A stretch of 63,442 nucleotides of DNA, filler included, from Octopus bimaculoides (lineage: Eukaryota), in NCBI RefSeq assembly GCF_001194135.2. It is 7 parts of 7 records of this genome, joined end to end, with 100 filler letters (N's around TTAATTAATTAA, not from the genome) between each part and the next. Parts side by side here need not be neighbours in the genome. Positions count along the whole stretch, not along the records: positions 33,780 to 44,150 come from NC_069004.1; 6 more parts are not named here. The stretch is one strand, 5' to 3'. The position numbers and the translations under genes were made by a program. How positions within the stretch are numbered: the stretch's first letter is position 1; each line of letters starts with the position of its first letter. The notes below the pieces were generated by a model. The model saw only the letters and a list, made by a program, of their open reading frames with translations, did no database searches and was not told the origin of the DNA. Of this stretch, positions 9,284 through 45,470 are shown in pieces.

Positions 9284-10817
9284 TTTTTCGTAAATCATGA
9301 ATTTGTTCCAGCATTTTAGGTTGGAAGATAAAGTCAATGAGTTGGAAGGGATAAAGATCTAGAAATGTCATGGCGACTAAAATATTTAACAAACATTGAG
9401 GGTGTTGCAAAATTTCATTCTTTCGCTTTCCAGACTCCAGTTCCTGTAGTATCTTATCCCAAAACTCAGGAATTGGTCCTAAAACAGGTTCAAGATTGGC
9501 TACAGAAAAGCAGATTTTTGTGATATCTTTCAATCTATACTTGAAAAACTCTTCAAAATTAAGTCGATTTTTTACATTTGCTAAAAATTCATCACTGACA
9601 AAATGAATGTTGTGGAAAAAAAGTATGATGTGCATGAATGTTGAGTAAGTGTATTGATGGAGGTGTTTAGAGATGGGATTTATCAGGTCATCCAGCTCAT
9701 GGAATAATGGCAACATAGTTTTATCTATAGACTTTGAACAAGATATTTGGAAACCTTTAAATATTGAAGCTACAGTCAATGAATCAGCTTGTTCAAGACT
9801 TTCATTAAGTTTTTTTGCAGAGGCTTCAAGAAAATCTGAGTTACGTATTTGTTTTTTGGTTTTGAAAAATCCAAGACAAATAATTGCAGTTTCTTCAATA
9901 GAGAGACTTTCTGAAATTGAAGGTAGACATTGAAGTATTTGAACAGTAATTTCCAAAGGCATTTGGCGGGCAAGATTGGCATAGAACAAACTGAGAACTA
10001 TTTCATGCTTGTTTAATAACCGGTCTTCAATAATTCCAAAAAATGTATGCTTGAACTTACATGTTCTATAATAATGGAGTAAAAAAAAGAAATCATTTGC
10101 TTGAAAGAATTGCTTTAAAGTAAAATCCTTTGAATGTAATACACATTGGTTATCAATGACCTTAGCCATTTGGACACCAATCTTTTGTTGTTGCTTTGTT
10201 GAGCTGGACCGGAATTCAAAATGAATTATAATGTTCATATAATGAAATAATTGCTCAGTATTCCATTTTGGCAGTTGGTCAATCAGAAGTCGACAAATTT
10301 CAAGAAATATTTTATTTGTGAATAACTTATGACGCGTTTCTGCTGAGAATTTTGATAAATTGTGGAATTTATCAAGGATCTGTGTTGGAGAATATGTCTG
10401 AAAGTTATGAAGAAAATCATTCAAGTCTGTAGTTTGGTTTTGACTACAATGTTTGATATATACCCGAGGTAAAAAGAACGACTGATATTCTTGGTTGTGA
10501 GATAAATAATTATAAAAATGCTCATTTTCAGTTTCTTGATGTTGAAAAACTGGGGTATATTTATCTTCTTGGAGGGAAGAATAACTTTTTTTCAGGAACT
10601 GAACTTTTTGATTTTTTCCTTGGACCAAATTGTTTTGATTCTGATAAAATGGTAAGTACTGATGGAGGGAAGATATTTGAAAACCAACAGTTTTCTTTAG
10701 TTGGTTGTGAAATTCTTTGAAACACAAAGTAGAAACAGACGACGATTTGTAAAGAAGGCCAAGGAATTGCAAGGAAACTCTTTTGGAACAATTTTGGCAA
10801 ATAGTTTTTAGAAGCAT
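9284..10817 (-). CDS. FASTKD5: FASTKD5-like, coding exon 1 (large; probable mitochondrial presequence, helical repeats, FAST_1 region)
   Basis: 1.5-kb open frame with FASTK-type helical motifs (LSIEETAIICLGFFKT, YRLKDITKICFSVANL, HPQCLLNILVAMTFLDLYP). Donor CGAAAAA|GTAAGG at 9283 is phase 1 and fits exon 2. An acceptor (ctctgcAG|) lies 19 nt upstream of the ATG, so an upstream non-coding exon is implied. Paralogue assignment (FASTKD5 versus other FASTKD) is from recalled similarity. Confidence 0.88.
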
Positions 10818-13619
10818 TGTCCTTTGAGATGAGAATCTGCAGAGAAAATNNNNNNNNNNAAAAAAAAAAAAAAATATAAGACAGATTTATCCATCTCAAG
10901 GTCAACATTCAAAAGTTAGCTTAGTTAACTGAATCACTGATAGAATAGGAGTATCATAGCATCTATAAATAGTTTAAACTACATTTCTTAATCTCTTCCA
11001 GCAGTCAGGGAAGACATTTTGTTCTAACAATGAGATGTACAATATACACCTAAATGGTACTAGCCTTGAAGAACACTTCTTTCATGAGTACCACTCTGAA
11101 GGAGAGATGACCTAGACTGAGTATCTACAAAGTAATTACAATTCTAAGTAAAAGGAAATTATATCTAGTTTCTATTTAATTTTGTTTTCTTGAAAACTTA
11201 CTAAACACTTTAGCTAAGCACCAATTGTTTTAATCAGTCACTAAAGTAACGGAATATTTATAGCACTCCATTATAAATGAAGTATTCCATTTATAAGATG
11301 TAATAAGATATCCTCATGATTTTAGCTATAGTGGAATTGGATTAAATAGAGGTACTGGTAGTATATGGCATATGGGTGAACATTAACCTTGAGAATAACT
11401 CAATTTTGTCTTTTAGACCCAGGACCATTTTTGAATGACTGTTTTGGCAGAAAAGTAGGCAAGTGTTACCATACTTCAAAGCAGAAAATGCAAGTTTTTT
11501 TTTGATTCTTGGCTGAAACAATTTCACTTTATATACACTACAAATGACCCCAAGAAGGTCATTAATATCACACATCCATTGTTTGTTTCCCAGATGACAT
11601 CATTTGCATAATAGGAACACTCATTTACAACTATCTCATGATGTCAAGACAAGGAGACACAAACACACACACACATATATAAATATATGTATATGAGTCT
11701 TTTCTGTTTTTGTCTACCAAATCCACTCACGAGGCTTTAGTCAGCCTGGAACTGTAGTTGAAGATACTTACCCAAGGTGTCATGCAGTGGGACTGAACCT
11801 GAAACCATGTAGTTAGAAGCGAACTTCTTAACTGCAAGTGATATCTACACCTAAAAACAATATCTTTACAAACTGAAGGTACAGCACAGTTTCGAATCCA
11901 AGAGGAAATACTACAATACCTAAATAGCTTTATGTTTAATCTCAGGTCAGTTTTGATGAAAGGTATTCCAATAGTGACCTTCCTATCTTATTTCAGACAT
12001 GGTGCATCCTAGCACCATGTTATAGAATGGGGCCTTACTTTTTAAGGATGTAATTGGAAAGAGATTTGTTTGTTATATTTAGTAAGTTGATAGAGCACAT
12101 AGAGGACAAACCAGCCTCTCAGAAATTTAGACTTGAAATTTGACAGCAAAAAGTATCAGAACCAGTTATTCAATATAAATAATTCAATCAATTATTGCTG
12201 ATCAATGGATTTTATCATTTGCTTTGCTTTATGGTATGTGCTCAATCCTACTAACTCTGCTTCTTCATAACTTTTTAAAAAATGCTTATTTTTTAATGAA
12301 ATTTTCCAGAGATACATTTTTGATGGTGTAGATGATGATTATATTGTGGTATAATCATAATCTACACCATCAGGAACATGTTTGTAGAAAATTTTATTAA
12401 AAAATATTCATTTTTCAGAAAGTTATGAAGGAACAAAGTCAAGGGAGAATGCCTTCCTTTTAGTACCAACTCACCTAAGACCACCTCCAGTTCTAAATTA
12501 ATTGAAACAAAAACAAATATAATAATAATAATGTTAATAAACAACAGAAACTAAACACTATACATAAATAAACTGATACTGCAATATGTAAAGATGAGAC
12601 TGCTATTTTTAGCAGTTTGAAAGCCTATGCAGAGGCACTGTCAGTAGGAGCCTTTAAATAATTAAACCTCAGGTCAACTCTGATGCAGAAACCTACAATT
12701 AAAGACACTCCAGCAGTAACCATCTCGTTGGTTAGGATTTGTAGTGCTACATTATATGACAATTTCCAAATTACATGTGGTAATATCTCTAAACCCCACT
12801 TTTTTGTAGAAACTGGAGTCTAAGTCACAAGGTGTTGATAAACATCTGAAACGATTTTGAGCATTAAGGGTGCCGAATTATTAATGAACTAATTCTAAGG
12901 CTTAAAACTCACTAATTTCCAGTGAAACATCAATGTCGTAACTAGTATTCACCAAACATATATTTCACATGAAATATTCCAACTAATGACTGAATTTTTA
13001 TTGCTCTTTATTAATTTTTGTTAAGTATTTTCATTAAATTTCTTTAAACATTTCTTATTAAAACAGTAATGACACAAAATAATGAATGAATTGTATTTAT
13101 ATTAAGAAATTTTTTATTAATTATATTTTGGGATTATATTTTAGAAATTTCCATGATGTGGGTCTATAAGTTACACAAGTCTGCATTTTTAAATGAAGTA
13201 AATAATGATTCTGAACTGTTTTTTTAATGCTGATTTCAAATGTGTATTTAGTTTTTGCTTATCATGTACAGATTTTGTCCAAATGGCTGCCAAAGATATG
13301 ATGATTTTTCTTGTCATTCATTCCCTTTTGTGGCATACTTTTAGATAAAAGTATGATGAAATTAAGAAAAAATGACTACAATAATAATAAAAAAGATATG
13401 AATAATGTATGTAGGCTTACATATTGACTAAATATATATTTTTAATGCACTTACCATGGCCTTAAATGTAATTTTACTATTTTTCAAACTTCCTTTTCTT
13501 TTGATTTCCTTCCAGCTTTTGATAGTTGCTTGCAGTCTCTCTTTAGCAGTAAACTGCTATCATGTTTACATTCCACCTGCCCTGGTACCTCCGCTCCATT
13601 TCTTTAATGTTTTGGTGAA

Positions 13620-33779: not shown

Positions 33780-36700
33780 TCGATGGTCATCCATTCTCCT
33801 GACATGCCCCAGCCACCTCAGTCTTCTCATACACAAGATAGCTGTCATGCTTTGAAGATTCGCCTGCGCCAGCACTTCAACATTGGTGACCTTGTCGTGC
33901 CATATTAGGCCTAAGATCTTGCGGAGGCATCTGAGATGGAAAATGCCGAGGCTTTCCTGTCTGCGGTACAAGGTCCATGTTTCAGATCCATAGAGGAGTA
34001 TTCTGAGAACACATGCTTCATAAATCCTGATNNNNNNNNNNCCAGCCACCTCAGTCTTCTCATACACAAGATAGCTGTCTTGCTTTGAAGATTCGCCTAC
34101 GCCAGCACTTCAACATTGGTGACTTTGTCGCACCATGTGAGGCCTAAGATCTTGCGGAGGCATCTGAGATGGAAAATGCCGAGGCTTTCCTGTCTGCGGT
34201 ACAAGGTCCATGTTTCAGATCCATAGAGGAGTATTCTGAGAACACATGCTTCATAAATCCTGATCTTTGTCTTCATGTCTAATCTCTTGTTTTTCCAAAC
34301 TCGTTTTGTCAGCCTTCCCAAAGTTGTTGCTGCCTTCTCTATCCTGACATTAACCTCATCATCAAGTGAAGTAGTAGAGGAAATGGTAGACCTTAAATAG
34401 CAGAACCTGTCCACTGTCTCAAGCTCTTTGTCATCAAGCTTGATATGGCTTTTCACTGCGCCCTCCCGAGTGAGAACGATTGTCTTCTTTACACTGATGA
34501 CCAAACCGAAGGCCTTGCATGCTGATGATAGATGGTCCATCATTATTTGTAGAGTTAATTCACTGTGAGCAACAAGTGCCGCATCGTCGGCGAAGAGAAA
34601 GTCTCTTATTGTTGCTCTATTGATCTTAGTCTTGGCCTGAAGTCTAGAAAGATCAAAGAGTGACCCACCAGTTCTCCAACAAAGGTAGACATCTCCCAGC
34701 AACTCTTGGAATGCATACTGCAGCAATACAGCAAAGTAAATGCTGAAAAGGGTTGGTGCTAAGACACAACTTTGTTTTACTCCGCTGTTGATGTTGAAGC
34801 TATCTGATATTAAACTGCCAAACTGAATGGTGGCCTTCATGTCATCATGGAACGAAACAATGAGCTGTAGTAGTATTGGGGGACAACCACATTTTCCAAG
34901 CACCATGTATAGTCCTGATCTGCTGACTGTATCAAATGCCTTCGTCAGATCGACAAATGTTATATATAGTGGTAATTGCTGCTCCCGGCATTTTCCTTGT
35001 AGTTGACGAATGGAGATCATATCCATTGTTGAGCGGTTAGATCTAAGACCGCACAGGCTCTCTGGTAGTACTCTTTCTGCTAGCTTCTGAAGTCGTTTCA
35101 GAATGATTCTCGCAAAAGCTTTTCCAGTGATGCTCAGAAGTGAGATACCTTTGTAGTTATTGCAATATCCATTGTCCCCTTTATTTTTGTAGAGAGTGAT
35201 GGTCTTGGGATCTCTCATATCCATTGGAATTTTTACTTCCAACCAACACGTCTTTAGCAACTTGTATAAATATGGAAAGATGGCATCTTTGTTCTCTTTC
35301 AACACTTCAGCAAATATATTGTCATTTCCGGATGCTCTTCCACTTGCAAGTTCATCGATTGTAGTGGAGAGTCCTTCTTCCGTTGGTGGGATATCAAGTT
35401 CTGTCATTTCGGGCAGCTGAGGAATGGCCTCATCAAGCTATCAACATCTCACTCCTTTGTGTACAATTGAGAGTAATTTTCCACCCATCTTTCCATTTGT
35501 TTCTTCTTGTCCGTCAGCTGGTCATCTGTTGCAGACTTGAGAGGTGCCACTTTACTCACTGTTAGTCCGATAGCAACTCCAATCTTCTCATACATTTTCC
35601 TGATATTACCCATGTCACTCGCCTGTTGAATTTCTAAGCATAATTTATCCCAGTACTGGTTGGCACATTTTCTAGTTTCTTTTTGAAGGTTGGATTTTGC
35701 AGCACGTAGCTGTTGCTTTGTACTTTCTGTTGGCTTTCTATTGTGCTTTATGAAGATCTTGCGCTCTTTCTCAAGTAATGGCATAAGTATTGATGCATTG
35801 GCTTCGATACAGTCCTCCTTGGAAAGTCGATCCGTTCCAAAGGCCCTCGACGCAGAACCATATATTGCTGATTTCATGTTGTTCCACATGTGGTCAGGGG
35901 ATATGCTATCTAAGTTTTGGAGCTGTTCTTCAACATATTCTTGAAATTTGGTTCTTATCGCTGGATCTTGGGTGTATTTTGTGTTGGTCTTAGGTTTCTT
36001 TGATTTTTCGGCTCTTGGTGTTTTCTTTGTGACTATCTTTACCTTGGCTATAACCAACAGATGATCTGTATTACAGTCTGCACTTTGAAAGGATCTTGTT
36101 TGCTTCACAGTGTTGACATCATTCTTTCTGACGATGACGAAGTCAATCTTGTGCCAATGACCTGATCTTGGATGGCACCAAGAAACTTTATGCCGGTCTT
36201 TGTCATTATAAAAGGTGTTTGCGATGCACAGGTCATTACTTGTGCAGAATTCTAAGAGTCTCTCGCCATTCTCATTGATTTTCCCCAGTCCAAACTGTCC
36301 AAGGTAGTTGGACGATGCTTAGTGATCAGCGCCTACTCTTGCATTGAAATCGCCCATGAGAAAGAGTTGATCTGCCTTTGGGGCACTGTTGATCACATCC
36401 TGAAGTTCCTCGTAGAACTGATCTTTCTTCTCATTTTCTGCTGTTAGAATCGGGGCATAGGCACTAATGAGATGGGCCCTTGCAGTTTTAGTCCCCACTT
36501 CTATGATAGTGATGCGCTCAGATATGCCTCGAGGAGTACTAATCTTGTTCAGCAATCTGTTGTGTACTGCGAATCCCACACCATGGATTCTCCTCTCATC
36601 TTCCCCAAGCCCCTTCCAGAAGAATGTGTGATTTCTTTCCCTAATGGAACCAGAGTCAGCAAGTCTTGTCTCTTGCAGGGCAGTATGTCTACATTCAGCC

Positions 36701-37075
36701 GTGTGAGCTCCCTGTCAATGATTGCCGTTTTCCTAATGTCCTCTGTTTTGTCCAGTTCAGTAATGTCCATTCCAGTTGTCATTGTTCTTACATTTCAGGT
36801 CCCCAGTTTCAATAGAGTCAATTTCAATTTTCTTCGTCTTTTGCCAGGTGCTGGCCTTCACGTCTGCTTTTCGGTTTTTGTCCTAGCTCCATACACCCTG
36901 AGCAGCGGACAGACGAGGTGGATCAGCACGTTACTGACTGGGGACTGCCCAGTTTAAGACGGGCGGTAGCTGATCAGTGCGATTGAATAATCATTCCCAT
37001 CGTAAACTGCCACTTCCGTGTTGTTTCCCTTGCCTGTTGCAGCAAGGATGAAGTGTCCTCTCCACATGCTCCCTC
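33780..37075 (-). mobile_element. RTE-clade LINE, near full length (APE endonuclease + RT), few lesions
   Basis: APE motifs (NVRTM, GVGFAV, ISAYAP, MGDFNARVG, IDFVIV, TDH) at 36800-36050. RT ORF 35407-34097 (YKGISLL, FVDLTKAFDTV, GVKQSCVLAPTLF, LFADDAAL) and RTE C-terminus (LLYGSETW, RLRWLGHV). At least two stops and two frameshifts. The 5' boundary is approximate. Confidence 0.95.
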
Positions 37076-37879
37076 TCCCTCTTTTTTTTTTTGCCGCGTC
37101 CTCCCAGAAATTCTAAGTCCTTGGCTAAGCTAAATGCCTGAGCTCTGAATGTATGGAGGACATGCCTTACCCAATTTGCACGATCCCCCTCTCGACTTCA
37201 CTGATTTATTCCAAAGGAGAGACAATGTCATTACATTTGGAACCAGCAAAGTTGCAGGGGCTGCCAGAAAATAGTTTGGATCATTCCTCCCCATCAACTG
37301 CCTTAGGGGCCCTCTCTCCGGGTTTTCTGTTTGGGTTTACCCCCTTAGCCTTTCATACTCCTGTGTGTGTCTACAAGGCAGCAGAAACAGCCGCAGGTTG
37401 TATCATCTACTGTCATTTTGGTAGCAGCACTAGTCTGACCTCATACACACAGACACACACACACACAAACACAAGGATATACATAAAAAATAAATAAAAT
37501 AAAAATAAAGTGTAAAATGATATATATAGATAAGATATGCCATTGAGAAATTGAAGATAATATATATACTTAAAAGTAAAAATATGTAAGTAGAAATTTA
37601 AAATTTAAAATATGACATATATATATATTACAGATATTCTTTTCTTTTTCTTTTTCTTTTTACAAACGTTTTGTTGGATGGCCGTTGACTGTTCATGGAG
37701 TTCCTCCGCCCTTTGACGGGTCTTATTTTTTATCCTGCAGGGTGTCCAACACACCCTCCTCACCAAACAAGCCTGATGGGGTTGCCAGTTTAGTCGCCGA
37801 CGATCCGACCATGCAGCAGGTTGTACTGGGTTACATGTTATCAGTAGCACTCGAGAGCGACCTGACTCTCTCACTCACA

Positions 37880-37914
<35 letters not shown>

Positions 37915-38014
37915 NNNNNNNNNNNNNNNNNNNNNNNNNNNNNNNNNNNNNNNNNNNNNNNNNNNNNNNNNNNNNNNNNNNNNNNNNNNNNNNNNNNNNN
38001 NNNNNNNNNNNNNN

Positions 38015-38560
38015 TGGCTGGACCTCAAAGATTCCAGACACACAGATCCTGAGGACAGCTGATACCTTGAGTAGGCGATAGTGAACAAGCACCGGTTACG
38101 TTGGACTGGACACGTTATTAGAATGAAGGATAGCAGGATCTCTAAGCAGATGCTCTATGGAGAACTTGTGAATGGAAGGAGACTCCGGCAGAAACCAAGG
38201 CTGCGCTTTAAGGACTGTGTCAAATCCTCATTAAAGGCCTGTGATATGCAGGACACTGACTGGGAGAACAATGCCTGTTATCGCCATAGATGGAGGAAGC
38301 AGGTTAAGGAGGGGATCAACACTTTTGAGAGAGCACGTATCCAGCATGAAGAACTTAAGAGAGCTGCACGAAAGTGCACGGCTCGTATAGTGAATGGGGA
38401 AAGCTTAATCTGCAATGTTTGCAGTCGTGTATGCTGGTTAAGAGCAGGGCTCATTAGCCACCAACGGAGCCGTAAATGCAAAATGTAAGTTAGTACTAGA
38501 GCGCAGAATGTTCCTGAAGGTCGGCAATGGTCTTCCTTGGTCACGAGTGGACGGCCATCA
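38015..38560 (+). mobile_element. RTE-clade LINE 3' end (second family)
   Basis: HRLRWTGHVIRMKDSRISKQMLYGELVNGRR..QKPRLRFKDCVK plus C-terminal CxxC...GLISHQR zinc finger; ends at a (TA)-rich run. Confidence 0.9.
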
Positions 38561-38645
38561 TATGTACGTATATATATGTATATATATGTATATGTATGTA
38601 TATATGCATGTATATATATCTGTATGCATATATATATATATATAT

Positions 38646-39772
38646 TGATGCGACCACCGAAAATACAATTAGCGTTATATCCCTATCTCCCGGGCTGGGT
38701 TTTGAACCCGTACTCTGGTCAGTTGGGGACAATGGTATTTCCTTTGTCTTGTCGGCAACCACAGCTATTTTTAGCGTAGCTGCCTCCTTTCTGGTCACCG
38801 AAAGTTCAGCAGGCAGGACAAGAATTGTACCGAACCGACCCAGCTTTGGGAGGGGGTAAAGTAACACTATGAGCTATGGTATTTGGGATGAATAGGAGAA
38901 CAGGAATTGGCGGGAAGAAGTCGGCCGAAGCAGTTGGCCGGGAGGATTTGGCGCAGTCGAGTGGTAGCAGTCAGCCGAAGCAGTTGGGGACAGCAGTTTG
39001 CCCGAGGAGATGGGGCCAGTCGAGTTGGATGAAGTCAAGATGAAGAATGATAAGTCTGACAGATAGCCTATACTCAGAAAGCTATAGTCAGCAGAAATGC
39101 ATAGAGTCTCAGAGAGAGAGAGAGANNNNNNNNNNNNNNNNNNNNNNNNNNNNNNNNNNNNNNNNNNNNNNNNNNNNNNNNNNNNNNNNNNNNNNNNNNN
39201 NNNNNNNNNNNNNNNNNNNNNNNNNNNNNNNNNNNNNNNNNNNNNNNNNNNNNNNNNNNNNNNNNNNNNNNNNNNNNNNNNNNNNNNNNNNNNNNNNNNN
39301 NNNNNNNNNNNNNNNNNNNNNNNNNNNNNNNNNNNNNNNNNNNNNNNNNNNNNNNNNNNNNNNNNNNNNNATGTGTAACTGAAAAGAGAAAACGAAGAAA
39401 AGAAAGAACAGAAAGAACTTTTGATGGACTTAATGATTGCAAACCCTTGATTATGTTCACGCAATGTCACACCATTATATGCTATTGAACTGTTATGTAA
39501 TGTTTTGAAATGTATTCTCATGTTTATGTAATGCTTTATTCTCATGTTTTTGATGTTATGTAAAAAGAAAAGGTTACCCAACGCATGGTCTTCGTGTTGT
39601 TTCTTCCACCCCTCCTTTTGCCTGTGTTGTTCTTCGTTCCGTGCTCCAGCCGGGGCTTATTATTGGTCAGGTGACCGAGGCGAGCTGCTAACTCACCGAG
39701 CGTTCGACGTTCGCGCGCGCGCGAGTTCTCTCTTCGGTTAAGGAGATGCTTCGCGTGCGGGCGTTCGTAACA
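38646..39772. mobile_element. Probable solo LTR (TG...CA, 4-bp TSD) in a (TA)n tract
   Basis: Begins TGATGCGA and ends TCGTAACA (imperfect inverted termini). ATAT flanks at 38642-38645 and 39773-39776. GC-richer than flanks; no coding capacity; contains a gap. Confidence 0.6.
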
Positions 39773-39902
39773 ATATAAATATATGTATATATGCATAGAT
39801 ATGTATAGATATACGTATATATATGTATATATATATATCTATATATTATACATATATGTAAATATATCTGTAAAATAATATGTGGCAATTATTCGGTTGC
39901 CA

Positions 39903-39966
39903 TTATAAAACTCCGAGTTTCGGATGTCGGGGCGGAAATCTGCACCGGCATCCCGTCAGTCAATAA
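39903..39966 (-). ncRNA. Degenerate type I hammerhead ribozyme-like motif at the PLE 3' end
   Basis: TTATTGA-CTGACG-GGATGCCGG...CCGACATCC-GAAA-CTC-G-GAGT-T-TTATAA: stem II and stem III form, stem I has a bulge, and core A9 is missing. Confidence 0.5.
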
Positions 39967-40177
39967 GACAAAACAAAAATGGTATGAAAATGACCGTTAA
40001 ACAAAGGGAAATTACTCTGAAGTTAACCGTTATTAAAATAAACAAAAGAGCTATTAGTATGACCGTTAAGTAAAGGAAAAAAACTCGTAAGTAAAAAACC
40101 GCTCATAGGATTCGCGTATGCGCGCATGTACATGTATATACATGCGTGTACGCACACCCACGCACATGTGCATATAT

Positions 40178-40553
40178 ACATATGCTCACTCACACTCGCG
40201 TGAAACACATACATGCACACCCACACACACACCTACATGTATGCATATATATGCAACAGTACACATGTACACATATAGATATCCGCACACACGCACACAC
40301 GTATATAAACCCATACCCGCACAATTATATTCATATACACGTCTAAAATACGCATATGCTATATATATATGCATATGCTCACTCACACTTGCGTGAAACA
40401 CATACATGTATACCCACACACACACCTATATGTATACATATACATGCAACTATATACACGTACACATATAGGCACCCGCACACACGCACACACACGCACA
40501 CGTATATTTACCCATACGCGCACAAATATGTTCATATACACGTCTATATACGC
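40178..40553. repeat. Two ~190-bp tandem copies of a complex CA/TA-rich unit inside the PLE 3' region
   Basis: CATATGCTCACTCACACT(C/T)GCGTGAAACACATACATG...ATACACGTCTA(A/T)A(A/T)ACGC at ~40178 and ~40371. Confidence 0.85.
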
Positions 40554-41690
40554 ACATGCATAAAAAGCAGGGTGAAAGGTAAAATACAGTAAAAATATGT
40601 AAAAATATATAAAGCAATAAAAAATATATAGAAATATATATAAAAATATTTAAAAATATAGAGATAAAATGCTTGTACGTGGACACAATATAAAAAGCAG
40701 GTTCTATCTGTGTTCTTGGGGGGACCAAAAACGTAACAAATATTTAGCCATACGTGGACATGATCCAAAAAGCTCAGTTCTTGAATTTAGACATGTAGCG
40801 GGGTCTAAGCTGTTTTACCAGATGAGCCATCTTTCCATATCACAAAGACTGCACTTTCCACTGCCGTTGGTGCTTGCACTTGGCTAAGATCTCCCAACGG
40901 ATGTTGTAATTGACACCTTTTTCTTTTAAGGACCATATGTAACTGGATAATTTGGTTGTTTTTCGTTTTTTCCCAGTGTCTGAAGCTCAATGTGGTATTG
41001 TTGAACCTGGATCTAAAATTTCCCTCTGTGAGACCCACATATTTCTTTGACGAAACTATGTCCTTAGTGGTTGTAGAGTCTACGGTGGCTTCATAAATGA
41101 TGGTCTCGGACATACAACCTCCATTTAGCGGGCACAAATTTTTATTCCTTCATGAACTGCTGGTGTCATTTTGTTGTTTTTGTGTGTTGTGCGCGATTAT
41201 ATTTTTAAAATTGGCAGTTGAGCTAAAACTGATTTTTAAGTTATGTATATTGAAGAGCTTTCTATAATTATGACTGATTGGAAAATTCCTACCTATAAGT
41301 GTTAATAAATATTTACCTATATTAAAGGTCACTTCGGGAGAGTAAATGGGTGTAAACCAGATAGTTTTCCTATTCCTGTTTCCTTTTCTTTATTATTGGA
41401 CTGGTAACAGGTGTACAGGTTATTTCCTCGCTGAATCCACTATCTTTTAGAGCATTATTATATACTGGGGCAACACTATCAACAATGTCCCTATCGGAGG
41501 AGAGACTAGAAAATTTTTTGCTAATGTTTTTAACTAAATTTTTAAACACTATGGGGAGATGGCAGGAACCTACATTAATATAACTAAGTCTATCGTTGGG
41601 CTTCCTATAAGGTTTTTAAATATTCTTATTTAAATCTAAGGATACAGCTAGGAAATTTACGTTTGACGGATATTTGTCCTCATCGTGTTT

Positions 41691-41918
41691 GATGTAGCGG
41701 TTAAGAACACGGCTACTAAACCCAAGATTCCGAGTTCGATTCCAGACAGTGACCTGAATAATAATAACATCCCGGTTCGAAATTTCCCCAAGACACCTGA
41801 TGAAGGCTGGAGGGTATATCAGCCGAAACGTTGTGTTAACAACAAACAAGTCGAGGACAAATATCCGTTAAATGTAAATAATGTACATAATTCCTCATCT
41901 CTTAAATATAGAACTGTA
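41691..41918 (+). mobile_element. tRNA-derived SINE carrying a hammerhead ribozyme (family E)
   Basis: A-box-like TGTAGCGGTTAAG, anticodon-arm-like GGCTACTAAACC, B box GTTCGATTCC (41734-41743), (AAT)n spacer, HHR core, AT-rich tail ...AAATGTAAATAATGTA. Confidence 0.8.
41792..41837 (+). ncRNA. Minimal type I hammerhead ribozyme (dimer type)
   Basis: GACAC-CTGATGA-A-GGCTG(gagggtatat)CAGCC-GAAA-CG-T-T-GTGTT. Stem I GACAC/GTGTT, 5-bp stem II, palindromic ACGT stem III with no loop, cleavage triplet GUU. Confidence 0.75.
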
Positions 41919-41961
41919 TTATGTGTATATATACGTATATATGTGTATATATGTCTATCTG

Positions 41962-42026
<65 letters not shown>

Positions 42027-42077
42027 NNNNNNNNNNNNNNNNNNNNNNNNNNNNNNNNNNNNNNNNNNNNNNNNNNN

Positions 42078-42148
<71 letters not shown>

Positions 42149-42273
42149 ATAGTATCAAGTAAAGGTAATAAACCTCACTAAATGATCATAAATCCAATGA
42201 AAATATTGGTTAGTTATCAATCTATAGACAGGTCATCTATAAGGTAACAATATAAACCGTGATTCATATATTT

Positions 42274-42590
42274 ATATATTCAAAGAATAAGGAGAAAACA
42301 GAGAGGTAATTAATAAAATTATTTATTAATTATAAAATATGACAACATCAGTGACAGCTGTTTCGATTCAGAAACCGTTAACAGTTTACAGCTTTTATCT
42401 CACTATGTATTCTAATCGGTATGTCCTTACTACCTCTGAAGAGGTTCATCTTATAATGATTTTAATTTTATAAATTAATTATCTAAAGATTTCTGAATCG
42501 AAACAGCTGTCAGAGACGTTGTCATATTTTATAATTAATAAATAATTTTATTAATTACCTCTCCATTTTCTCCTTATTCTTTGAATATAT
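42274..42590. mobile_element. ~101-bp inverted-repeat element with an HHR-like core (inverted PLE pLTR-like structure)
   Basis: Arms 42274-42374 and 42490-42590. Contains CTGAAGA-GGTTC...GAATC-GAAAC-AGCT-GTC at 42436-42511. Confidence 0.7.
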
Positions 42591-42763
42591 GTATATATAT
42601 ATATGTATGTATACATATATATGTATATGCATATNNNNNNNNNNNNNNNNNNNNNNNNNNNNNNNNNNNNNNNNNNNNNNNNNNNNNNNNNNNNNNNNNN
42701 NNNNNNNNNNNNNNNNNNNNNNNNNNNNNNNNNNNNNNNNNNNNNNNNNNNNNNNNNNNNNNN

Positions 42764-43630
42764 GGATCTGTTGGCTGTTGTCCAATGGGCAGAAAAAAAA
42801 CAATATACTTCTAAATGAAGATAAGTTTAATTTGATCCCCTTTGGAAAAGAAGATACTCTGAAACTACCATATACTCTTCCCTTGGGTAACTCCCTAGTG
42901 TCATCCAACAACACAAAAGACCTTGGAGTAATTGTTGATAACAATCTAAGCTGGAGTTCCCACGTAAACAGCAAGGTTGACTTGGCCCGCAAGATGTGCT
43001 CCTGAATTCTGAGAACTTTCTGGTCTAGAGATGCCCACCCCATTATCCTTCTCAATTCTACTTTTGCCTGACCCCAGCTTGAATACTGTTGCCTAGTGTG
43101 GTCTCCCCATACGAAGCAACTCATTATGAAAGTGGAAGCACTCCAGAGGTCATTAACAAGAAATATAGACAGTATGACACGTATTGACTATTGGGGTCGC
43201 CTGAAAAAACTCAATCTCTATTCTCTCCAATGCCGCCGGGAGCGCTACATTATTTGTGAGATGTGAAAAATATTCCATCAATATTGCGCAAATGATTTTG
43301 GCATCAATTTTAAAATCCACCCAAGACTTGGCCCCCATGCTATCCGCCCACTACAAAAATCGAACTCAGGACACATAACAACATCAAGTCACAGCTACGT
43401 TGCCTGCCCGGCCCAGCTCTCTTTAATACCATATCAAAATACATCAAAACGGAAATGGATCCCATAAAATGCAAAAGTTCAGTGGAGAAATTTCTTCAAA
43501 AACTCCCGGACCAGCATCTTACACCCCGATGACTTCAACAATATTAACTTTTTGCTAGAGTGGGCCATGGTGTCCCATATGTGACTGAAAGACTTCACTA
43601 GGTGATGCTATTGACCGAAACCTATCAAAG
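42764..43630 (+). mobile_element. CR1-like LINE, 3' portion of ORF2 with 3' UTR, degraded
   Basis: DLLAVVQWA...NEDKF...KDLGVIVDNNLSWSSHVN...ILRTF...LEYCCLVWSP...RLKKLNLYSLQCRRER; stops and frameshifts. Confidence 0.9.
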
Positions 43631-45470
43631 TTATATATGTATATATATGTGTGTGTATATATATACGTATGTATGTGTGTATATATATGTATATATATAT
43701 ACGTATATATATGTCTGTATACATATATATGTATATATATATGTATATATATATATATAAATATGTGTGTGTATATATATGTATGTATACATATATATGT
43801 ATATACATGTCTGTATACATATGTATGTGTGGAGGCGCAATGGCCCAGTGGTTAGGGCAGCGGACTCGCGGTCATAGGATCGCGGTTTCGATTCCCAGAC
43901 CGGGCATTGTGAGTGTTTATTGAGTGAAAACACCTAAAGCTCCACGCGGCTCCGGCAGGGAATGGTGGCGAACCCTGCTGTACTCTTTCACCACAACTTT
44001 CTGTCACTCTTATTTCCTGTTTCTGTTGTACCTGTATTTCAAAGGGCCAGCCTTGTCACTCTGTGTCACGCTGAATATCCCTGAGAACTACGTTAAGGGT
44101 ACACGTGTCTGTGGAGTGCTAAGCCACTTGCACGTTAATTTCACGAGCAGNNNNNNNNNNNNNNNNNNNNNNNNNNNNNNNNNNNNNNNNNNNNTTAATT
44201 AATTAANNNNNNNNNNNNNNNNNNNNNNNNNNNNNNNNNNNNNNNNNNNNTTGTTTTTTTTTTTTGTCAATTTCATTCGAATCGATACTGTTACATACTC
44301 ATAGCAGAACACATCCCAGTCTGAAGTTATGCCAAATTTTATACCAATCAGTAACTCCAGAGTTTTGATTAGGGTTTCAGAACAAGATTATAACGATACC
44401 TCCAAGCGTTAGAGATAGGGGCTACTAATTGGCAAAAACTATTTTCCATCAATTCTACTTGTATTTTTATTCACTACTTCATATCCAGTGACTGAATTTC
44501 TAATTTTTCATAAAGCCATTTTATCTCACTTAGACATCGTAATATCCTTGAATAGAAGTAGCAGTAATGTCATAATTGAACCACAATCATCTTCTGTTAA
44601 AACGGAAGGACGCATTAAACAGTGTTCTTCGAAATACACAGTTATTGAAAAGAGACAAAATAGGCACAATTTGAATCTATTTTATCATGTTTGCTCAATC
44701 CAGACCGAGCTAAATAATTATTTCTACACTAGGCACAAGGCTCTGGGAAAGATAGTCGATTATATTGACCCCAGTGCGTAACTGGTACTTATTTCATCGA
44801 CTTCGAAAGGGTAAAAGGCAAAGTCGACCTCGGCGGAATTTGAACTCAGAGCGTAACGGCAGATGAAATACAGCTATGCATTTCGCGCGGCGTGCTAACG
44901 ATTCTGCCAGTTCGCTGCCTTGAACCGACCTAAATAATAACAACTATGGCAATGATATTTATTGCGAACCACGGGATTATACATTCCCAAGAATTCGAAG
45001 TCCTATGCTTGTATTAGTTACCTACATTATATGAATTAAATACGCAATTTAAGGAAGATCCAGTGACGATGGAAGAGAGATACACATCTCTTAACTGATT
45101 ATCACCATTAAACCGGAATTAAATGCTGGTTATTATGAACCTTTGGTGATATTAGTGACACTTCATCCTGAATAAAGTCTAAATTGCTGGTTAGATCTTA
45201 AGCCCGTGCGAGATAATGATGTCTTCGTAATTAAAGTCGTGTATTTATTGATGTTAACGTTACACGACCAAATAAGAAATACCGAATGTTTGTTGATATT
45301 TATCAGACGTAAAATACGGGATTGTGACATTAACAGAACTAATGAGGTTCAGTAAGACAAGCGTAGCTATGTGGTAAAGAGATTCGCTTCACGGCTATTA
45401 GGCTGGGCGTTCGATCCTGTTGCAGGGCATTTTTTGGGGAGGTGATGGTAGTGGTGGTGGGAAAGTATAG

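Follow-up and report, generated by a model that had tools for sequence, protein, structure and literature searches.

A truncated Penelope-like element and a SINE joined head to head through an inverted SINE segment in Octopus bimaculoides

How did a Penelope-like element (PLE) and a short interspersed element (SINE) come to lie head to head in the genome of Octopus bimaculoides, with a short backwards piece of the SINE at the seam between them? SINEs are defined by their dependence on long interspersed elements (LINEs), and to our knowledge the only dependants credited so far to animal PLEs are promoter-less retrozymes. The locus belongs to a window of 63,442 nt (the whole stretch of DNA presented for analysis, filler included), in which we analyzed the piece at positions 33780-44150 (record NC_069004.1). 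This piece is AT-rich, with TA/TG microsatellites, assembly gaps and retroelement debris throughout. The explanation that we favor, at a probability of roughly 45%, is that the locus represents the scar of one complex retrotransposition performed by a Penelope-like enzyme, which combines a GIY-YIG endonuclease with a reverse transcriptase (RT), on two RNA templates.

Anatomy of the seam

The inverted segment separates the SINE, which runs on the plus strand from 41691 to ~41915, from the PLE, which runs on the minus strand from 41660 to ~40704, and the two elements stand head to head. The features that make up this arrangement are the following.

40704..41660, minus strand: PLE open reading frame (ORF) fragment, 5'-truncated and decayed, of the Hydra clade, with RT motif 7 (VNFLAVSLDL), linker and GIY-YIG endonuclease.
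41655..41660, minus strand: junction microhomology GTAAAT, which makes up the final 6 nt of the inverted SINE piece and also the Val-Asn codons of the PLE motif VNFL(D/A)V.
41655..41695, minus strand: inverted segment of 36-41 nt from the interior of the SINE, ACATCAAACACGATGAGGACAAATATCCGTCAAACGTAAAT, which codes for the consensus-like KHDEDKYPSNVN.
41691..41915, plus strand: SINE with a tRNA-like head, near full length, its 3' end (~41915) set from Octopus copies.
41839..41879, plus strand: direct arm, internal to the SINE, which begins 6 nt past the predicted cut of a hammerhead and differs from other copies by private substitutions.

The arms of the inverted repeat (41655-41695 and 41839-41879) are 41 nt each and 85% complementary, with a spacer of 143 nt. 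Gapped local alignment again returned 41 nt, and the 36-nt core named in the initial annotation of this DNA falls inside the arms. A 27-nt core, GAGGACAAATATCCGTYAAAYGTAAAT, occurs only twice, once in each arm, compared to an expectation of 0.00 from 100 shuffles. Beyond 41 nt there was no significant extension (340 of 1000 shuffles scored equally well), and a longer inverted repeat entering the tRNA-like head was ruled out, the extension being at chance level. At the PLE-side joint, the two sequences share a microhomology of 3-6 nt (GTAAAT, which is ATTTAC on the plus strand). At the SINE-side joint there is a GATGT/GTTGT overlap, in which the inner 5 nt of the inverted segment (GATGT on the plus strand) coincide with the beginning of the SINE head.

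Within the SINE, the order on the plus strand is a tRNA-like head, an A-rich spacer and a conserved 3' half. The head, beginning GATGTAGCGGTTAAG, abuts the repeat directly on its right, as the initial annotation had placed it. It contains promoter-like motifs, namely a B-box-like GAGTTCGATTCC at 41732-41743 and a weak A-box-like TAGCGGTTAAG; no tRNA was called in it by ARAGORN or Rfam. Other copies of the SINE were sought by means of a stop-free reading frame through the element, so that the matches are spurious or exonised translations. Copies of this kind were found in O. bimaculoides (P0131 and P0146), in O. sinensis (P0010) and in several further assembly contigs, and these translated matches indicate that the SINE belongs to a family with many dispersed copies. 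In the tblastn back-alignment, P0131 (O. bimaculoides) and P0150 have ...NVNNVHNSSS(L/F)KYRT in common with the window, and on this basis the SINE reaches ~41915, about 36 nt past what had been taken for its tail. The inverted copy of the SINE previously noted at 41655-41690 is therefore real, but it derives from an internal segment rather than from the terminus.

A chance open frame of 77 aa on the minus strand (41616-41849) spans antisense SINE, inverted piece and part of the PLE without a change of frame; it is not a gene, and chance frames like it explain why SINE copies are listed as 'proteins' in public collections. A metagenome scan with a 16-mer from the repeat returned 120 loci, all of them chance matches of 16-27 nt to a pattern that is too short, and a 24-mer from the conserved core had 0 matches in a viral collection and 0 in a prokaryote collection. 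Identity with the Ceph-domain was rejected, since the published motifs (PMC5786205) are matched solely by short words on the reverse strand, and in an incorrect order.

The two arms differ at 6 of 41 positions (15% divergence), which indicates old genomic sequence and not a duplicate made by the assembler. This bears on the explanation that the seam arose when reads from distinct repeats were wrongly joined in a draft assembly with gaps, which we regard as very improbable. Gaps do lie close by (42027-42077 and 42635-42763), and inverted structures of PLEs are known to trouble short-read assemblies (PMC8557442). However, the arms are 85% and not 100% alike, with a longest exact match of 16 nt, the joints of 3-6 nt are too short to mislead an assembler, and no gap occurs within 40560-41920.

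The consensus of the segment, K(H/Q)DEDKYPSNVN (from P0010, P0131, P0136, P0146 and P0152), agrees with the inverted piece, and the direct arm departs from it by three private changes (GAT to GTC, TCA to TTA and AAC to AAT). With a consensus-like inverted piece and a privately changed direct copy, the same RNA molecule is not required as the source of the inverted piece.

A Hydra-clade PLE truncated at the seam

The coding fragment on the left is a genuine Hydra-clade PLE. Translation of the minus strand from 41666 downwards gives VNFLAVSLDL..YRKPND..SYINVGSCH and continues, past frameshifts, with RKTIWFTPIYS...IIYEATV...KKYVGLTEGNFRSRF...KCSLCDMER...NSRTELFGSCPRMAKYLL. The motifs appear in the order IIYEATV...YVGLTEGNF...KCSLCDMER...NSRTELFGSCPR, and the frame terminates with ...KYLLRFWSPQEHR and a stop codon. 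The copy is old and has decayed, with no fewer than 3 frameshifts and a number of in-frame stops. The stitched translation has nine homologues (P0001-P0009), with 35-44% identity over 97-98% coverage. These carry the motifs YRDDG, FLDV..D, CNCRxxxxC, IIYEAT..YVGLTEG, C.LCL.EK and N.RSE..CRH, and full-length relatives additionally have RMRWK/RMRWR and ADKT/ADKS.

The traits described for the Hydra clade are the lack of CCHH, a CxCX5C linker, CxxC and CxH around a conserved E and N, an RWK motif, DKT replacing DKG, short length, the presence of hammerheads and insertion into (TA)n (PMC8557442). The GIY-YIG domain of the window PLE has IIYEATVDSTTTKDIVSSKKYVGLTEGNF, with no Cys pair between GIY and YIG; a homologue, P0005, gave a weak Pfam GIY-YIG match (E 0.004, under the cut-off). 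The homologues have CNCRKKETC, C.LCL.EK and N.RSE...CRH; of these motifs the window copy retains KCSLCDMER and NSRTELFGSCPR (with H changed to P), and its CxC part has decayed. Of the RT, the window copy retains motif 7 and the thumb side only, and the N-terminal two thirds are missing. The RT of the PLE relatives (YRDDG, FDV.MGS.DGAE) had no match in Pfam RVT_1 or PDB searches; RT4 is highly divergent in the Hydra clade (PMC8557442).

Protein homology to PLEs (tblastn) extends from 41660-41663 down to ~40728, and its onset lies in or touches ATTTAC (41655-41660), at the Val-Asn of the conserved VNFLDV. The truncation point of the PLE thus coincides exactly with the seam, and no upstream PLE RT sequence was found by tblastn elsewhere in 33780-44150. 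These results confirm two points of the initial annotation, that the coding fragment is a truncated PLE and that the inverted piece runs into it through the shared GTAAAT. An insertion of the PLE into a pre-existing palindromic SINE dimer was also considered and ruled out, because the missing 36-nt arm end is absent to the left of the PLE.

The regions that flank the two elements on their outer sides are listed below.

40560..40703, minus strand: remnant of the PLE 3' flank or untranslated region, AT-rich, with no hammerhead core and no SINE similarity.
40100..40559: complex CA/TA-rich microsatellite (TG/TA in the PLE sense), which holds a 193-bp tandem duplication.
41916..42140, plus strand: TA/TG microsatellite 3' of the SINE, with an assembly gap at 42027-42077 inside it.

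The tandem duplication (89%, 40172-40493) lies in the CA/TA-rich stretch at the 3' side of the PLE. The mixed TA/TG microsatellite that forms the 3' flank of the PLE is non-discriminating, as the 3' ends of LINEs in the piece are alike.

The coincidence of truncation and seam also bears on an explanation by successive unrelated insertions, in which an old 5'-truncated PLE later received at its edge a SINE moved by a LINE or other RT. We take this to be a serious rival, if a rather unlikely one. The 36-41 nt of backwards filler would in this case arise in a twin-priming-like manner, with a target end ...ATTTAC-3' priming on GUAAAU of the SINE RNA, and a 6-nt match between primer and template suffices for such internal priming. 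This explanation is further favored by the abundance of SINEs, which make up ~11.6% of an octopus genome and render adjacency common (PMC13282606), by the differences between the inverted and direct copies, by the LINE 3' ends with a microsatellite of the same type as that of the SINE, and by the lack of any sequence in common between the SINE and the adjacent PLE 3' flank. It requires, however, that the PLE truncation and the SINE insertion points coincide within a few bases, and a SINE that entered an intact PLE predicts upstream RT sequence to the right of the SINE, where there is none. Moreover, classical twin priming inverts an RNA segment upstream of the direct part without duplicating a stretch of the direct copy, whereas the inverted 41 nt here duplicate 41839-41879, a stretch that the near full-length direct copy contains as well; the locus therefore does not conform to twin priming of the LINE-1 type. 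Successive insertions would also leave unexplained the hammerhead motif in the SINE and the palindromic and tandem relatives of the SINE.

Hammerhead motif in the SINE and its tandem and palindromic relatives

The SINE contains a motif that satisfies the full descriptor of a minimal type I hammerhead.

41792..41837, plus strand: minimal type I hammerhead motif, inside the SINE.

The descriptor demanded a helix I of at least 5 bp, a helix II of at least 4 bp, the pair A15.1-U16.1 with one more pair, and a non-G at position 17. The motif reads GACAC-CUGAUGA-a-GGCUGG(8 nt)UCAGCC-GAAA-CG-UU/GUGUU, with cleavage predicted after U41832 (slash). Helix I (GACAC/GUGUU) comprises 5 bp and helix II (GGCUGG/UCAGCC) 6 bp, and the palindrome ACGU forms helix III. 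It is the one match to the descriptor in the piece, compared to 23 in 40000 scans of shuffled strands, and the core with helix II alone likewise gave 1 match where 0.04 were expected. Helices I and II are both retained in the minimum free energy fold. One pair of helix II covaries among the relatives: the octopus copies (W..Q) have U-A where the tandem family described below (R..R) has C-G, with U.G intermediates; this covariation was read from amino acids on the assumption that Arg is CGG, with 23 of 25 units pairable. Hammerhead cleavage at a GTC in the direct arm (41850-41852) was ruled out, since other copies have GAT there and the GTC is a private substitution.

Hammerheads of the same design accompany PLEs. 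Relatives of the Hydra clade (L122, L123 and L124) have minimal hammerheads 85-265 nt past the stop codon, and the palindromic design of helix III is also present in L123 (AGCU) and L124. A very short palindromic helix III marks the minimal, dimer-acting hammerheads of PLEs (PMC7761336). A PLE-type hammerhead in the SINE suggests that the SINE and the PLE may share one copying machinery, of which a single old locus is no proof.

Rfam 15 misses the clear minimal hammerheads of PLE type located at 1316-1375 in L122, at 11679-11720 and 2331-2372 in L123 and at 11662-11704 in L124, also at E 10 with a 111-nt query. Counts of hammerheads in invertebrate genomes that are based on Rfam will therefore miss the minimal class.

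The 3' half of the SINE recurs in another family as tandem units of ~43 aa (129 nt), observed in P0132-P0148. In P0150, P0132 and P0134, the sequence passes first antisense and then sense through that unit, with the arms cut at an identical point, and these are head-to-head palindromic dimers. Tandem arrays and palindromic dimers are the insertion manner of PLEs and their dependants, unlike that of the usual LINE-driven SINEs (PMC8557442). As a separate observation made at the protein level, the tandem repeats of P0132-P0148, which are homologous to the hammerhead-bearing 3' half of the SINE and come from ENA contigs of 150-350 kb, have the appearance of a retrozyme-type satellite.

Another arrangement of interest was observed in L121 (positions 9512-10750 of a contig of ENA ERZ26858540, from another species), where a tRNA-like sequence (tRNA-Leu according to ARAGORN), a T-run, (TA)n and a PLE hammerhead half follow one another in this order. 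These parts sit in an inverted duplication (82 nt at 99% and 38 nt at 100%) that adjoins a 5'-truncated Hydra-clade PLE. Among the three hammerhead halves, the homology ends exactly at GAAAU/H, which is the predicted cleavage site. As a candidate for a second SINE-PLE chimera L121 was downgraded, because its tRNA-like part resembles a real tRNA gene with a T-run terminator, located in an inverted duplication.

Proposed copying on two templates and comparison with known systems

According to the explanation by one retrotransposition on two templates, the PLE enzyme would have opened both strands of the target DNA. The 3'-OH of one side would have primed complementary DNA (cDNA) on PLE RNA and been extended for ~1.1 kb, to RT motif 7, and the 3'-OH of the other side would have primed cDNA on SINE RNA, nearly all of which would have been copied. 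The stalled PLE cDNA end ...ATTTAC-3' may then have jumped to a SINE RNA at an internal GUAAAU, copied 36-41 nt across the AC-rich GUUAACAACAAAC region and halted 6 nt before the predicted hammerhead cut. The new end (..GTTTGTTGT) could pair over 3-4 nt with the terminus of the SINE cDNA (the complement of GATGT), after which the strands would fill in mutually. The expected outcome is two head-to-head elements with outer TG/TA microsatellites and a short backwards piece of the SINE at the seam. A PLE enzyme studied in vitro cuts both strands of its target and extends them; reverse transcription begins within its RNA, in an AC-rich stem-loop, where two start sites separated by 30-40 nt delimit an optional 'tail' (PMC11167929). 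PLE insertions are marked by a tail of 30-40 bp and an inverted copy truncated at its 5' end, neither of which is observed with LINEs (PMC8557442). The remark in the initial annotation that PLE insertions often come with an inverted, 5'-truncated terminal repeat is in keeping with this description, to which the 'tail' is to be added.

Several observations weigh against this explanation. There is only one locus, which has decayed, and a single event is inseparable there from successive events. The inverted piece is closer to the family consensus than is the adjacent direct copy, as could come about from another RNA or a distinct event, and it lacks the last ~36 nt of the SINE, so that the jump would have landed internally. 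The evidence from other SINE copies is at the protein level only. The SINE has no sequence in common with the 3' flank preserved in the adjacent PLE copy, and the hammerhead core CTGANGA was not found on the minus strand at 39900-40720, downstream of the window PLE ORF; the 3' end of this copy was probably lost or overgrown by the microsatellite. Target-site duplications are unreadable in the microsatellite flanks, and the outer microsatellites are not diagnostic of a PLE enzyme because the LINE 3' ends in the piece are alike. Rfam reported no hammerhead in the SINE even at E 10, but it likewise misses the clear, textbook hammerhead of L122 (111-nt query), and its silence on the SINE motif is for this reason without weight.

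The initial annotation had proposed a template switch between PLE RNA and SINE RNA as evidence that the two elements are partners. The microhomology, the PLE-type hammerhead and the tandem and palindromic relatives speak for this proposal. The 3' sequence that partners might share was not recovered: the tail of the SINE showed no similarity to LINE or PLE 3' ends within the piece, the 3' region of the adjacent PLE copy included.

The microhomologies also bear on a rearrangement at the DNA level after insertion, by filler in end joining or by template switching at a replication fork, in which no RT would have acted at the seam. We consider such an origin a serious rival too, but an improbable one. 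Short microhomology at both joints typifies microhomology-mediated end joining and fork switching as well, and microsatellites, gaps and inverted or tandem duplications are abundant in the piece (42266-42598, 40172-40493 and 33809-34264). The limits of the fragment, however, are non-arbitrary, being the PLE truncation point on the one hand and a position 6 nt from the predicted ribozyme cut on the other; its size is at the upper edge of the 30-40 bp range of the PLE 'tail', and the head-to-head habit is found in relatives elsewhere.

Chimeras between an autonomous element and a small RNA have a precedent with LINEs. Buzdin et al. in 2002 reportedly described U6-L1 and similar chimeric retrocopies, made by template switching of the LINE-1 RT. 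In these, as at our locus, the autonomous partner is cut short at its 5' end and continues, without a change of orientation, into part of a small RNA polymerase III RNA, which is explained by an RT jump from one RNA to another. They differ in that the enzyme is that of a LINE and the small RNA is copied to its 5' end, whereas the partner here is a PLE and the locus has only 36-41 internal nt copied, followed by the full SINE in inverted orientation.

Closer in layout are the complex insertions of PLEs (Evgen'ev & Arkhipova 2005; Craig et al. 2021, PMC8557442; Frangieh et al. 2024, PMC11167929). These consist of pseudo-long terminal repeat (pseudo-LTR) tandems whose 5' end bears an inverted copy with a 5' truncation and, optionally, the 30-40 bp 'tail'. 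The locus resembles them in its head-to-head order, the 5' truncation, a seam segment of ~30-40 bp and the microsatellite flanks. It differs from them in that its arms are heterologous (PLE and SINE) and the seam segment is derived from the SINE instead of the PLE itself.

Among small elements, Sm-alpha and Sj-alpha of Schistosoma (Ferbeyre 1998; Laha 2000; PMC6765202) are likewise short, non-coding and of polymerase III type, with a type I hammerhead and often in tandem. They belong to another host phylum, the octopus motif is minimal and probably of the dimeric PLE type, and the likeness is one of reported features. The metazoan non-LTR retrozymes (Cervera & de la Pena 2020; PMC7761336; bioRxiv 10.64898/2026.07.22.740005) are small and non-autonomous, have type I hammerheads and are proposed to depend on PLEs, and the relatives of the SINE 3' half also take the form of ~129-nt tandem units. 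The published retrozymes are promoter-less tandems of 150-300 bp, in contrast to the window copy, which is single and dispersed with a tRNA-like head and thus falls outside this class. MRC1 of Chlamydomonas, a non-autonomous derivative of Chlamys PLEs (PMC8557442), is non-coding and PLE-dependent, with pseudo-LTRs and head-to-tail arrays. Elements of the MRC1 type share their 3' ends with an autonomous family, whereas no such 3' match emerged for the SINE within the piece. Our literature search found neither hammerheads reported from octopus SINEs nor a description of SINE-PLE chimeras.

A broader proposal, which we regard as doubtful at present, is that the abundant octopus SINE family and its ~129-nt tandem relatives might be tRNA-headed, hammerhead-bearing, non-autonomous partners of PLEs, copied through internal initiation and double-ended priming. 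The SINE family would then normally use the PLE machinery, many cephalopod 'SINEs' would not be LINE-dependent, and the locus would be a chimera caught in the act. If so, the concept of a SINE would extend to a third class of retroelements, the thousands of 'orphan' minimal hammerheads in animal genomes would in part be accounted for, and the new in vitro PLE system would gain a natural substrate. As octopus genomes are ~12% SINE, the question concerns the origin of a large part of the genome. The locus by itself is a single fossil, valuable for the genome-wide pattern that it points to and that can be tested.

The remaining observations concern neighboring repeats in the piece. All four retroelement 3' ends (of two LINE fragments, the SINE and the PLE) are followed, each in its own sense, by a microsatellite of the TATG/TG type, at 38488-38650, 43600-43830, 41916-42140 and 40560-40100. 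That this is common to all four suggests that the tails were added or seeded at insertion rather than being a pre-existing target. At 42266-42598 there is a 115-nt inverted repeat (92% complementary, spacer of 103 nt) with TA-rich microsatellite borders and the look of a miniature inverted-repeat transposable element or foldback element. A second, unrelated tRNA-derived SINE (GGAGGCGCAATGGCCCAGTGGTTAGGG...GGTTTCGATTCCCAGACC) lies at 43832-44150, directly after a TA/TG microsatellite; it had no ARAGORN call and runs off the piece. On the minus strand at 33780-36108, a LINE has an intact RT ORF of 436 aa (34097-35407), whose best database relative is 71% identical, and contains a 233-bp tandem duplication (33809-34031 and 34042-34264, 97%).

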